Assembly (NCBI GenBank): GCA_037447605.1
Contig: CM074812.1
Coordinates: 186,001-250,000, forward strand
Length of the DNA: 64,000 nt
Direction of reading: 5' to 3'
From: Zygnema circumcarinatum SAG 698-1b
Taxonomy: Eukaryota; Plantae; Zygnematophyceae
Numbering within the stretch: the first letter of the stretch is position 1; each line of letters begins with the position of its first letter. Below are positions 28,311-33,900 of this stretch, piece after piece. Under the pieces are notes generated by a model. The model searched no databases and had not been told where the DNA came from. It worked only from the letters and a program-made list of their open reading frames with translations. A program made the position numbers and the translations under genes.

Positions 28311-29004
28311 TCGTAGCGAGCAATTAGGGTGTGTCAGACTTAAAAAATTCTCGTAATAAATTGCTTGTTTTCGTCTGGTCCCATGCATGCCTGGATGCCC
28401 CATGCAGTTCTTTCTTTCCTACTAGCCCTGCAAACCACAAACCACAAACCACAAACCGGACGATGACGCTGACATAACGTCACCAAGATACGGAATCCGT
28501 ACGATGCTGGAGTTCTCGGCCCGTACAATGTACTTCAGTATGATTTGGAATTGAACAAACCAGATTTAATTTCCGAACATTAATATCGAATTTCGACATT
28601 TGGGGACTGTCAATATTGAACTCACCGGCCGGCTGGTAGCTGCCGACCGGCGACGACCGGCATCTGTAACCCTAGCCCTTGCTGCCGGCCACAGCCGGAG
28701 TTTGCCGGTCGCCGACAAAACCGGTGCCGCCCATTTCTCAGCTCATTGGAGCCGTCCGATTCGCAAATCGCCGCCGCCGATTTAAAAAAAAATAGTCAAA
28801 ATTTGAATTTCAAGAGGGCGAGTGCTTGGATTTGGAGCCTTGGAAAGTGAAAAGTCAAAATTGAAATTTCCCGCTCCAATTTTCAATTTTCTTGGTGTCC
28901 CGTTTTTTTTGGGCAGTTCGAATTTTCCGGCTGGCAGGGTTCAGCGCCGCCTTTTTGGCCTCCGCCAACCGCGAGGGTTCAGGGCCGCCTTGAAACCACC
29001 CGCG

Positions 29005-29042
29005 CCCTGAACCCTGAACCCTGAACCCTGAACCCTGAACCC
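29005..29042. repeat. (CCCTGAA)5, a TTCAGGG-type telomere-variant / telo-box-like array
   Basis: Five perfect heptamers from 29005 to 29039, followed by CCC. Confidence 0.9.
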
Positions 29043-29059
29043 CTCCCTCCCTGCACAGA

Positions 29060-29524
29060 GATAGGGAAAGAGAGAGAGAGAGTGAGAGAGGGAGAGAGAA
29101 AGAGAGAGGAGAGGGCGAGAGAGAGAAAGGGAGAGGGAGAGGGAGAGAGAGAGCGAGAGAGAGAGAGAGAGAGAGAGAGAGAGAGAGAGAGAGAGAGAGA
29201 GAGAGAGAGAGAGAGAGAGAGAGAGAGAGAGAGAGGAGAGAGAGAGAGAGAGAGAGAGAGAGAGAGAGAGAGAGAGAGAGAGAGAGAGAGAGAGAGAGAG
29301 AGAGAGAGAGAGAGAGAGAGAGAGAGAGAGAGAGAGAGAGAGAGAGAGAGAGAGAGAGAGAGAGAGAGAGAGAGAGAGAGAGGAGAGAGAGAGAGAGAGA
29401 GAGAGAGAGAGAGAGAGAGAGAGAGAGAGAGAGAGAGAGAGAGAGAGAGAGAGAGAGAGAGAGAGAGAGAGAGAGAGAGAGAGAGAGAGAGAGAGAGAGA
29501 GAGAGAGAGAGAGAGAGAGAGAGA
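29060..29524. repeat. ~460-bp nearly pure (GA)n tract
   Basis: Seen directly. The encoded 'ERERER' ORF is an artefact. Confidence 0.97.
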
Positions 29525-29996
29525 CTTCCAGGGGATGCCGCTATGAGGGGGCCGTTTAAAGGATTCGAGCGCTTTTAGGGTTTATCTTTTCTCCTTGTTT
29601 CTTACTTCTCTTTGCAGGAATTTCAATATATATATAATTTTTTTTTTCCAGTTTTTGGAGTTTTTTGGGCCTTGTTCCAGCGAGCGAGGATTTGAGGACC
29701 GGTGAGGTACGCGCAGAAATCGAGAGCTCACACTACATTGCTGATTTCTTAAAGAAAATGAAAATAAACAAGGAAGGAAAAAGCTTCCTTTTTCAAGTCA
29801 TGTTAGAGTTAGAGCACATGAATGGCTTTATTAACATTAACATAAAGATGTGTCTTTAACATTAAACTTTCATATAGGTCGAGTTCTGCTCGCAGTTATC
29901 TTTATGTTTGTGTTTTCTTTTTATCTTCGGCTTCAGCTTTATGGTTGGCGCCAGCTCTAGGTTTTGGCTAGCTCCTGCCAGCTGTAGGGATATGGC

Positions 29997-30380
29997 TAGG
30001 GTTAGGGTTAGTGTAAGTGTAAGGTTAACGGTTAGGTTAGGGTTAGGGTTAGGGTTAGGGTAAGGGTAAGGTTAACGGTTAGGTTAGGGTTAGGGTTAGG
30101 GTTAGGGTTAGGGTTAGGGTTAGGGTTAGGGTTAGGGTTAGGGTTAGGGTAAGGGTAAGGATTAGGGTTAGGATTAGGGTTAGGATTAGGGTCAGGGTTA
30201 GGGTTAGGGTTAGGGTTAGGGTAAGGGTTAGGGTTAGGGTTAGGGTTAGGGTTAGGGTTAGGGTTAGGGTTAGGGTTAGGGTTAGGGTTAGGGTTAGGGT
30301 TAGGGTTAAGGTTAGGGTTAGGGTTAGGGTCAGGGTTAGGGTTAGGGTTAGGGTTAAGGTTAGGGTTCGGGTTAGGGTTG
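29997..30380 (+). repeat. interstitial telomeric array, ~60 units of TTAGGG with TAAGGG/TCAGGG/TTAGGA variants
   Basis: Long perfect (TTAGGG)n runs at 30040-30380. Degenerate TTAGGG-like motifs continue to ~30770. Genes lie on both sides. Confidence 0.97.
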
Positions 30381-30924
30381 CTGCAACTCTACCATAAGGT
30401 TAGGCTTACGGCAAGTTTTATGGTTAGAGTTAGTGGTTGCTGCAAGCTTCAATATTAGGTTAATGCTGCTGCCATCGGTGGATTAGGATAGGGATGGAGG
30501 TAGGTTGGGATTAAGGTTACTGCAATCTCTATCATGAAGGCTAGGCTTATATTAAGTTCTGAGGCTAGGGTTAGGGTTATTGCAAGTTTTAGGTTAGGGT
30601 TAAGGTTAGTCCTGTGATTAGGGTTAGGGCATCTGCTTGCTCAGAGTTTGCTGTTGGGATTGGGGTCATTGCAACCGTCATGGCTATAAGTAGGGTTACT
30701 ACAATCTCTATGATTAGTCTGCCCAACCATTAAGTTAGTGTTGCTGTAAGCTCTGTGGTTTAGGTTAGAATCGTACACGAGCCTCTCTCTCTCACCTTAA
30801 CGGGCAACGTCTGGCCGTTCCCAATAGAGAATGTTGCACGAGCACTTGAGAGATGCCAACCTTTTGTTGCAGCAAGCCGACTGTTTCCTCGAGGATGGAT
30901 GTGCAGAGGAGGCAGTGATGCGTC

Positions 30925-33900
30925 ATGGCAGGAGAGGGAAGGAACGTGAGTGAGAAGACCATCTCTGCCTCAGCTCAACCGTTTCCGGGCCGAATACTGC
31001 GCGGTGTGCGCTCGGCGAGACCTCGACCAGACCAGCTTGAGGTACGGCTTCCGCTTCAGTCTTCTTGATTGTTGTGCTCTTCTCTTCATCGTCTTGGTTG
31101 CGATATTTGAAATTTCTGATTTAGTGCCCTCTGCCCTATGGCATAATTCTCGTTACAATCGTTGTGTCTATGTGCCTCAGAACTCTGCGAACAAGAAACG
31201 GCAAAGTAAGAATTCGACTGACGCGAAGGAGGAACTTGTTTCCAGCATCCTTCACAGTCAGGTTGTCCAAATCAAGAGCATTGAAGTCAAAATAGCGGAG
31301 GCAGCACTAGCTTCCCCATCTTCGAATGACTCAAGTGCAAACCTTGAGGTTGAAGTGGTTGGAGCCGAGAAAGGTGTAGCATTGGAGGCGGGTAAAACAA
31401 TGGGATTCGATGTTTTAGCTGTTGTGGCCGAAAAAATTGTCGAAGAAGTCGAGTCTTCGAAGAGTGATATGGCAATAAAGCTTCCCAAAGGTGTTACTGA
31501 TGTGAGTATCGATGAGAACGAGCTCACTGGAGGAATGGAGGAGGATTGTAGAATGGACGAAGAAAGAAAGACGTTGACAGGTAATTTTGAAGGGGAAAGG
31601 GGGTCGAGTGAGCAGGAAAGAGAAGAGGAACCGGCTGGAAAATCTATGAAGGAAGGTAATGATCAGGAGGGAAGTCGAGAAATTGAGGAAGAAAGACTTA
31701 AAGTTGTTACGGACGGGAGATCTTCGCCGGAGGAAGAGGGGAACATGGACGAAAAGGTGCTTGAGGGAGTTGCGGTTGGAGAATATCAGAAGGAAACGGA
31801 GGAGAAGGAAGAGGAGAATGCAGACGGAGATGTGGATGTGGAGAGCATCGGTGAGGAAGAGATGGGCGATGACAAGGTTGAGGGAGATGCGGAGAAGAAA
31901 AATGCGCAGGATGAGATGGTGGGAAAGGAAGAAATAGATGAAATGGCCGAGGAAGTTGACGTGGAAGATGTCGAAGAGGGAGAGGAAGACAAGAAGGATG
32001 AGAGTGTTGAAGGAGCTGTGGAAAAGGAGGAGAAGCACGAAGGAGAAAGTATGGACGAGGGGAGAGTGCTGGAGGAAGGAAGCGAGAAGCTAGGCAAAAG
32101 TCTTGAGAGACTTGCAGAGGCAGGAAATGACGGGGAAAGTAAGTGGAAGTCAGAAGGTGAGGTGCTTGGAGAAGGGGCTAAGGAGGAGCACCGTGAACAC
32201 AAGGACAAGCCGGAGCCTTGTAATGCTATGGTCGTGGAGGAATCTTTCCATCCTGGGACTGTTATTGGTGCCGATGATTCTGCACCACCGGAGGCGAGAG
32301 AGAATGCCATCACAGAAAGAGAAGAGACCGCAGACCATCACCACCAGGTCGAGGTGGGGTTTCTTCCGCCAGCTGGAAATGTTGGTGAAGCTTCCTTGGC
32401 TGAGGGAGGGACGGGTGAAGCGGAAAATGGTGATTCACGAGAGACTGAGAGGGCAGAGCCGAATGTTGGGGATCCCACAGGGAATGACTTTGGAGAGAAT
32501 GTGGATGTAGACATTGAAGCAGGAACTCCTCCGCTCATAGAAGACTCTGCCGCACCCGTGGAAGACGATAACTTAGCGTTATCACCAGGTGAAGGAGACG
32601 TGAACAGAAGAAAAAGCTTTATCGAAGAAATGCAGGATGCTTTACTCCCTGAGGGGCTGACTCCTAACATTCAAGCAGAGATTGTAGCACAGGCAAGCAA
32701 TGCGGTAGCTCAGGGAGCAGGTGAGCAGGCAGATGAGCGAGTGGGAGAAGGAGCGGATGCGCTAACTGAGAGAGAAGGAATTGCCTTGTCGTTCATAGGG
32801 AGACACGATGAAGCGTATGAAGAGCAGGAACATGGAATGGGCGGGGAGGCAGATACATTGATGAATGAGCAACCAGTGATGTATGGGATGAACATGCAAA
32901 TGGGCTATGTAACATCGGACCCTGCATGTGCTGTGGATGAGGAGGAAGAGGACATAGATATCGTAGAAGTGGACGAGGAGGAGGAAGCAAAAGTGAAGCA
33001 GGCAATGGGAGTGGGGGAGGGAGTGCCGGTGGGAGAGGAGGAATACATGCGAGATGGAGAGGATGGTATGATGGAGGCACAGCCAGCTCAGGGAGAAATG
33101 GGATATGCAGAAAATGAGGATACCTTCATAGAGGGAGAGGTGGGAGTAGCACAGGCACTCGAGGAGGCTGAGGAAGCGGCTGCAGCAGACGTTGAGATAG
33201 CTGGAGGAATGGACATGGATTCTGCTTTGAAGAGAATGACAGGCATGGGGTCGCCCATTTCGAGGAACAAGCGGAAATTAAACAGTGAGGAGGAATTGGA
33301 GGACGAGCACGAGGCCCCTTCTCTGAATGGTCAGTGTTCCGGTTTCCGTGGGAAAGATTATACTTTTGGGTTTTTTTGAAATTTAGGGTATTTGGCCGTC
33401 TAGGCTCGGGCATATTGCAAGGCTTTGGGTTGAAGAGGAGTTGCCCACTTGTAGGGTTTCAGTGATTGCTGTATGATAACGCTCATTTAGGAAGAGATAC
33501 TCTTAACATTCTGGGGCTTTTGGAGTCCTATGGTTTGTGCTGGAAGTTGATCCGGGCTGATGATCTTCCTAGTTTGCCTCGGGACAGTAATGAAATTGGA
33601 TAAGATCATCTCCTGGGGTTCCACCTACCTCGTTAGGTAGATGACGACGACTGCTTTTGCTATTAGTACTGCCATTGTCGTTACTAGAATTGTACTTGAT
33701 TGCTGATTGCTCAGTGTTTCATGTGCTTGTTGAACAGACATCGAAATGTCTCGTCCTACACGACAAAGGACTGCTCGTGCCCCCCCCTCTAGGAAGAAGG
33801 CGAAGAGAAGTGAGGAGGAGCAGCAGCTTCTGATAGACGATGAGCCGCTGAACGAATTTGATGTGGACTTGGACCAATTGGTGGGGGAAGTTACCGAGCC

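Follow-up and report, generated by a model that had tools for sequence, protein, structure and literature searches.

The window analysed here is a 64,000-nt stretch of the streptophyte alga Zygnema circumcarinatum SAG 698-1b (assembly GCA_037447605.1, contig CM074812.1, positions 186,001 to 250,000), and all coordinates below are given within it. On its forward strand lies a gene for a TRP1/TRFL-type telobox-Myb protein, a relative of the proteins that bind double-stranded telomeric repeats in plants, and the first intron of this gene, situated in the 5' untranslated region (UTR), carries a long array of TTAGGG units. The pre-mRNA carries the G-rich strand of the intron, which ordinary GT-AG splicing removes. 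A first-pass annotation made from the sequence had recognized the gene and its repeats, and had proposed that the protein might bind its own locus. We therefore considered the transcript structure of the gene, the identity of its product, and the distribution of similar repeats across the window. The gene and its array comprise the following features:

29677-29706 (+), the RNA-supported part of non-coding exon 1, without an ATG
29707-30906 (+), 5'-UTR intron 1, 1,200 nt, GT-AG, containing the whole array and its tail
29985-30379 (+), TTAGGG-type array of period 6, 395 bases, 66.2 copies as assembled, 89% match, starting 278 nt after the donor
30380 to ~30770 (+), decayed composite tail of ~30-nt units, made of telomere-like hexamers and GGTTRCTGCAA (GGTTGCTGCAA-type) spacers
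30907-31041 (+), exon 2, with the last 18 nt of the 5' UTR followed by the main ATG at 30925
31181-33329 (+), large acidic exon of 716 codons
33738-33929, 34096 (or 34099)-34188, 34436-34515 and 34922-35181 (+), four RNA-supported exons, the last encoding a TRP1-type ubiquitin-like domain
35586-36125, 36245-36308 and 36481-36633 (+, ending in the stop codon), the three last exons, encoding the Myb domain and the Myb extension

This structure rests largely on assembled RNA. A query spanning 30780-36700, which adjoins the array, matched 20 sequencing runs, 6 of them with all sampled words and 14 with 65-83%. Older runs filed under the same species name share none of these words, which could reflect a strain formerly assigned to this species and since treated as a separate one. 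Four of the partially matching runs (65-83%, as expected of transcriptomes), representing four studies, were compared with the same interval, and spliced contigs were present in three of these four (X7, X8 and X9, from three studies). In each of the three, a loose end of 28 letters before 30905 was found to occur a single time in the window, at 29677-29704, and joining the end of exon 1 at 29706 to the start of exon 2 at 30907 reproduces the contig exactly. The intron so defined has its donor (GAG/GTACGC) between 29706 and 29707 and its acceptor (TGTGCAG/AGGAGG) between 30906 and 30907. The splice sites predicted from sequence signals are accordingly displaced, the donor CG/GTGAGG at 29702 by 4 nt and the acceptor at 30872 by 34 nt, while a further predicted acceptor at 29617 finds no RNA support, the contigs beginning at 29677. 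The predicted start codon at 30925 was retained, 18 nt into exon 2.

Removal of intron 1 leaves a 5' leader of at least 48 nt. An upstream ATG at 30918, out of frame and 7 nt before the main ATG, opens an 11-codon upstream open reading frame (30918-30953) that runs on past the beginning of the coding sequence; its presence may make translation of the Myb protein less efficient. Six additional GT-AG introns (31042-31180, 33330-33737, 33930-34095, 34189-34435, 34516-34921 and 35182-35585) are also RNA-supported, including the acceptor of the exon starting at 35586. At the third of them, a NAGNAG acceptor (34094-34099) is used in two ways, with exon starts at both 34096 and 34099 present in RNA contigs and a resulting difference of one codon. 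The last two introns were placed through GT-AG signals, reading frame and homology: none of the four runs listed a contig over 35730-36700, where the three Myb exons lie, even though these runs contain as much as 83% of the sampled words, and since some records are removed by a filter no meaning was attached to this gap. Together the nine coding exons amount to 3,648 nt, and a frame check identified a single, terminal stop.

Both the size and the singularity of the array, first described as about 60 TTAGGG units at 29997-30380, were borne out. It extends over slightly different limits (29985-30379) and comprises 66.2 copies, 44 of which are exact TTAGGG units as counted by script, with longest perfect runs of 13 and 11 units and with TTAGG, TAAGGG, ATTAGGG and TCAGGG as minor variants. 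A motif scan identified it as the sole long near-perfect TTAGGG array within the 64 kb, other perfect runs never exceeding two units. The array and its decayed tail occupy ~65% of intron 1, and the Myb gene is transcribed so that its G-rich strand has the sense orientation; correspondingly, the intron consists of 32% G and 12% C, and holds 63 GGG runs against 2 CCC runs. Internal segmental duplications are found inside the array and, together with the decayed tail of 30-nt units, form the trace expected of slippage or unequal exchange. An Rfam scan of the window returned no match, and hence no known RNA gene or element in intron 1.

An array of this kind could also be an assembly artefact, marking a wrong join or a repeat that was collapsed or assembled as a chimera. 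Three 10-N gaps occur elsewhere in the window, and the length of the array is that given by the assembly. However, unique sequence flanks the array on both sides, and RNA contigs of three studies splice the unique 28-mer at 29677-29704 to exon 2 past the array, so that the flanks lie in cis and in the same orientation and the array is internal. A mis-join at this point was therefore rejected. In addition, an unspliced X8 contig of 553 nt covers 30780-30934 and, by arithmetic on its length, would reach back to ~30382, the downstream edge of the array. Taken together, these observations make an artefact extremely improbable.

Its domain content identifies the gene product as a true plant TRP/TBP (TRFL family I) protein, as the first-pass annotation had proposed. 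The ORF at 34721-35206 matches the TRP1-type ubiquitin-like domain PF23603 (Ubiquitin_TPR1; E 4.9e-13, 49.1 bits against a cut-off of 27), a central domain shared with plant TRP/TBP proteins. A single C-terminal Myb domain of the telobox type is also present, divided among the three last exons: the first Myb helix (RRRIRRPFTVAEV...LGTGR; E 2.4e-08) is encoded by the exon ending at 36125, the middle 21 codons (WREVKLRAFSHSKHRTYVDLK) were recognized by reading the sequence itself, and the last exon (36481-36630) matches the AtTRP1 structure 2aje with an E value of 1.6e-18. Both matching halves recover the same plant structures, namely 2aje, the NgTRF1/TBP1 structures 2juh, 2ckx and 2qhb, and RTBP1 (2roh), which resemble the algal protein in combining a telobox Myb domain with a plant-specific fourth helix. 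This helix, the Myb extension, follows the Myb domain directly, the alignment continuing through RRGEPVPQELLERVTKAHAYW to chain position 100 of 2aje, and the segment DKWKTLVHTA.I.P.QRRGEPVPQELL.RV..AH.YW is nearly identical to that of AtTRP1. Unlike plant TRP/TBP proteins, the algal protein has 1,215 codons, about twice the usual length. The difference is due to the 716-codon acidic exon, for which a word search identified no relatives at E 0.001 or better.

DNA binding by the algal Myb protein and its motif preference are predicted from homology to plant TRP/TBP proteins only. Conserved within the Myb region is an RR pair in QRRGEP which, by our own count, corresponds to Arg-638 of NgTRF1, a residue proposed to explain specificity for TTTAGGG (PMC2377444). 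Its conservation would predict that the algal protein likewise prefers TTTAGGG. This bears on whether the intronic array is made of the telomere repeat of the species at all. In Z. circumcarinatum, a telomeric repeat amplification protocol (TRAP) assay shows synthesis of the Arabidopsis-type TTTAGGG repeat (PMC3622300), whereas CCCTAA has been predicted as the telomere motif of Chlorokybus, in which CCCTAA arrays are reported to be highly abundant (PMC8287931). The array unit is TTAGGG, while the motif enriched near gene starts in the window is the telo-box AAACCCTA, which is of the 7-nt type. Given the TRAP product, the enrichment of AAACCCTA and the conserved RR pair, the array is probably better called telomere-like than telomeric.

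The first-pass annotation had raised the possibility that this protein binds its own locus as a feedback or titration sensor. In such a scheme, the Myb protein would bind the intronic array and thereby repress or activate its gene, or the array would compete with telomeres so that expression tracks the amount of free protein. The protein does possess a complete DNA-binding module of the kind with which plant proteins bind double-stranded telomeres, the RR of QRRGEP among its residues, and the array is situated 310-700 nt into the transcribed region, counted from the 5' end. Parallels are also available from vertebrates, in which double-strand telomere binders are described as occupying interstitial arrays and influencing some genes (PMC12536529, PMC5681776), TRF2 being reported among them as both binding such arrays and regulating genes (PMC12536529). 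The present case resembles the vertebrate interstitial sequences bound by TRF1 and TRF2 in having an internal tandem TTAGGG array within a gene. It differs in that the host is a streptophyte alga and in that the host gene itself encodes a telomere-type Myb protein, a combination to which the literature consulted offered no precedent. Against self-regulation, Arg-638 of NgTRF1 is proposed to account for specificity toward TTTAGGG rather than TTAGGG (PMC2377444), and Arabidopsis TRFLs, which bind telomeric DNA in vitro, are described in one report as uninvolved in telomere maintenance (PMC12616469). A literature search gave no precedent for a telomere-binding protein gene controlled through telomeric repeats, and a comparable tract occurs in the first intron of an unrelated gene of the window, as described below. 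The proposal thus went unsupported, and we regard self-regulation at the DNA level as unlikely. The broader version, in which the double-strand telomere-repeat-binding Myb genes of this alga would generally carry 5' telomere-like arrays as decoy telomeres whose occupancy by their own products sets transcription, appears slightly less likely still.

The unrelated gene, on the reverse strand at 49870-52130, was identified as CLP1 through matches to the CLP1_N and CLP1_P domains over four exon ORFs. Its telomere-like tract serves as a comparison case outside the Myb gene:

51274-51640 (-), degenerate TTAGGG-sense tract in the first intron of CLP1

The intron concerned (~51128-51670) splits the CLP1_N domain, and consists mostly of a decayed tract of 330-370 nt that reads as CCCTAA-type on the forward strand. 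Rotations of the hexamer cover 33% of the tract, compared with ~1% by chance, the latter being a rough estimate made without shuffles. On the CLP1 sense strand the tract is TTAGGG-like, and it therefore has the same polarity as the array of the Myb gene. Thus two first introns in the window both hold a TTAGGG-derived tract with the G strand as sense, although their host genes are unrelated, and this type of array is not specific to the regulator's own gene. The caveat attached to the first-pass annotation, that degenerate TTAGGG-like tracts in other introns might make the association a matter of chance, is borne out by this tract. Long TTAGGG arrays being common in unrelated first introns of the genome was named there as refuting the proposal, and within the window the CLP1 tract provides such a case. 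A spacer motif, GGTTRCTRYAR, is also common to the TRP and CLP1 introns (5 occurrences against 0.23 expected). A mobile element or satellite family common to the two introns was considered and rejected, blastn giving a single match of 38 nt at 82% identity.

The shared polarity also has a bearing on a possible role at the RNA level, in which the UUAGGG-rich intron would form G-quadruplexes or a TERRA-like RNA, and would tune the splicing of intron 1 or bind telomere proteins after excision. The G-rich sense strand of the intron, with its excess of GGG over CCC runs, and the same orientation of the CLP1 tract are both in keeping with such a role. However, a polarity found in unrelated genes points to a bias acting across the genome, whether mutational or related to splicing, and such a bias explains the shared G-strand sense of both arrays better than telomere biology at the Myb gene does. 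Moreover, the word depth of the spliced contigs is far above that of the single unspliced intron 1 contig, and a low-depth unspliced contig was found at every other intron too, so that the contigs, whose depth is only indicative, point to no special retention of intron 1. The suggestion that G-quadruplexes tune its splicing accordingly gains no support from these data, and we consider an RNA-level role very unlikely.

Based on these findings, we consider it probable that the array is an ordinary telomere-like hexamer microsatellite residing in a 5'-UTR intron of an expressed TRP/TBP gene, and not a feedback switch. It would have originated within a composite minisatellite and lengthened there through slippage during replication or through unequal exchange, in a genome whose introns and intergenic DNA may be generally loaded with simple repeats, including telomere-like G-triplet arrays. 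In the genome of this strain, simple repeats outweigh every other class of repeat (6.4%; PMC11096116); within the window, tandem repeats make up 9.9% of the sequence, with 19 arrays of at least 100 bp. The array would then be neutral or nearly neutral, being transcribed in the pre-mRNA and subsequently spliced out, and that its host gene encodes a telomere-repeat-binding protein is most likely a coincidence. Any effect on expression would be generic, acting through intron length, chromatin or the G-rich non-template strand without a dedicated feedback loop. Two considerations weigh against this explanation. The background rate of such arrays is drawn here from one 64-kb window, and an array of 66 units, each differing from the plant repeat by one base, is likely to be bound by some Myb-type proteins however it arose.

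Additional repeats and promoter-like elements are located upstream of exon 1:

29005-29042 (+), (CCCTGAA)5.4 array, from sequence reading and Tandem Repeats Finder, ~640-670 nt 5' of the first RNA-supported base
29057-29524 (+), (AG)235 microsatellite, 468 bp, 93% match, upstream of exon 1
29576-29583 (-), canonical plant telo-box AAACCCTA, ~100 nt (94-101 nt) 5' of the first RNA-supported base
29627-29637 (+), TATA-like tatatatataa, from direct sequence reading, 40-50 nt 5' of the contig start

The (CCCTGAA)5 array at 29005, the (GA)n tract of ~460 bp and the telo-box near 29576 were thus all recovered as originally described. Their assignment, along with the TTAGGG array, to 5'-UTR introns was upheld only in part: the TTAGGG array lies in an intron removed from RNA (29706 joined to 30907), while an intronic placement of (GA)n and (CCCTGAA)5 finds no RNA support. 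Since all spliced contigs begin at 29677, these two repeats and the telo-box look more simply like promoter-side sequence 5' of the RNA-supported exon 1. The TATA-like element is a candidate core promoter only, which would make a transcription start shortly upstream of 29677 plausible. On the forward strand the telo-box reads TAGGGTTT, and it forms the core of TTTTAGGGTTTA at 29573-29584. Beside the (CCCTGAA)5 array, the sequence AGGGTTCAGGGC at 28974-28985 forms a 12-nt perfect inverted repeat with it, and an 18-nt direct repeat (AGGGTTCAG.GCCGCCTT) is found at 28936 and 28974.

The telo-box itself is unevenly represented in the window, with 12 copies of AAACCCTA against 1.98 expected, a six-fold enrichment that none of 100 shuffles reached. 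Copies occur near gene starts: one lies ~100 nt 5' of exon 1 of the Myb gene, two (a doublet at 52283-52308) lie upstream of CLP1, and two further doublets (48751-48767 and 49115-49130) face each other across ~350 bp, possibly as a bidirectional promoter. Single copies were also identified in two introns of the Myb gene, at 33452 and 36183.

These elements might form a generic cis-regulatory module, in which BPC-type GAGA factors and TRB-type Myb proteins would act on the (GA)n tract, the telo-box and perhaps the array, setting chromatin or expression as the telo-boxes of land-plant housekeeping genes do. In Arabidopsis, GAGA and telo-box motifs recruit Polycomb. The enrichment of AAACCCTA and its position just 5' of the TRP exon 1, ahead of CLP1 and within the facing pair at 48751-49130 agree with a module of this kind, and TRB proteins are described as binding promoter telo-boxes (PMC10167121). 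A canonical telo-box ~100 nt 5' of exon 1, enriched in the window, is also what the locus has in common with the TRB-bound telo-box promoters of plants. The array does not share this likeness: plant telo-boxes consist of one or two units of the 7-nt TTTAGGG type, whereas the intronic array is built of 6-nt TTAGGG units over several hundred bases, and is not of the promoter-enriched AAACCCTA type. Furthermore, GA/CT arrays detected by Tandem Repeats Finder are scattered throughout the window regardless of gene starts, which renders the (GA)n tract beside the Myb gene unremarkable, and the Myb gene is well represented in the RNA contigs and so is not silenced under the sampled conditions. We judge that such a module is an unlikely account of the locus, if a somewhat more likely one than self-binding.

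Several other repeats and duplications were observed in the window. A third telomere-like tract (52746-52859), CCCTAA-type on the forward strand, is located just before a possible forward-strand acceptor near 52935; if its host lies on that strand, the C strand would be the sense strand. The largest simple repeats, a 1.1-kb (CCCT)279 followed by (GACT)76, occupy 42153-43730. Upstream of the Myb gene, a 193-nt direct repeat (26445-26637 and 27992-28184; 92% identity, 1.5 kb apart) may represent a small dispersed element, each copy being followed by pyrimidine-rich low-complexity sequence. An inverted duplication of a gene region was also identified (20100-22265 and 45771-47607), in which the ORFs at 21837-22265 (-) and 45771-46343 (+) begin with identical residues; its second copy is broken by 10-N gaps at 45969 and 46599.

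Were the array to act as a self-binding site, it would provide the first example of a telomere-binding protein gene that senses its product by way of a telomere-like array within the gene, and with it a means of learning how cells adjust the amount of telomere proteins. More broadly, decoy telomeres carried by the Myb genes of this alga would amount to a circuit, undescribed in any lineage, that controls telomere-protein dosage by feedback or titration. Independently of this, RNA evidence has allowed the gene model of an unusually long TRFL-type protein of a streptophyte alga to be corrected. With the array read as an ordinary intronic microsatellite, which we consider probable, the more interesting question becomes the genome-wide habit of this alga of bearing telomere-like G-triplet arrays in its introns, together with the origin and the polarity of these arrays.

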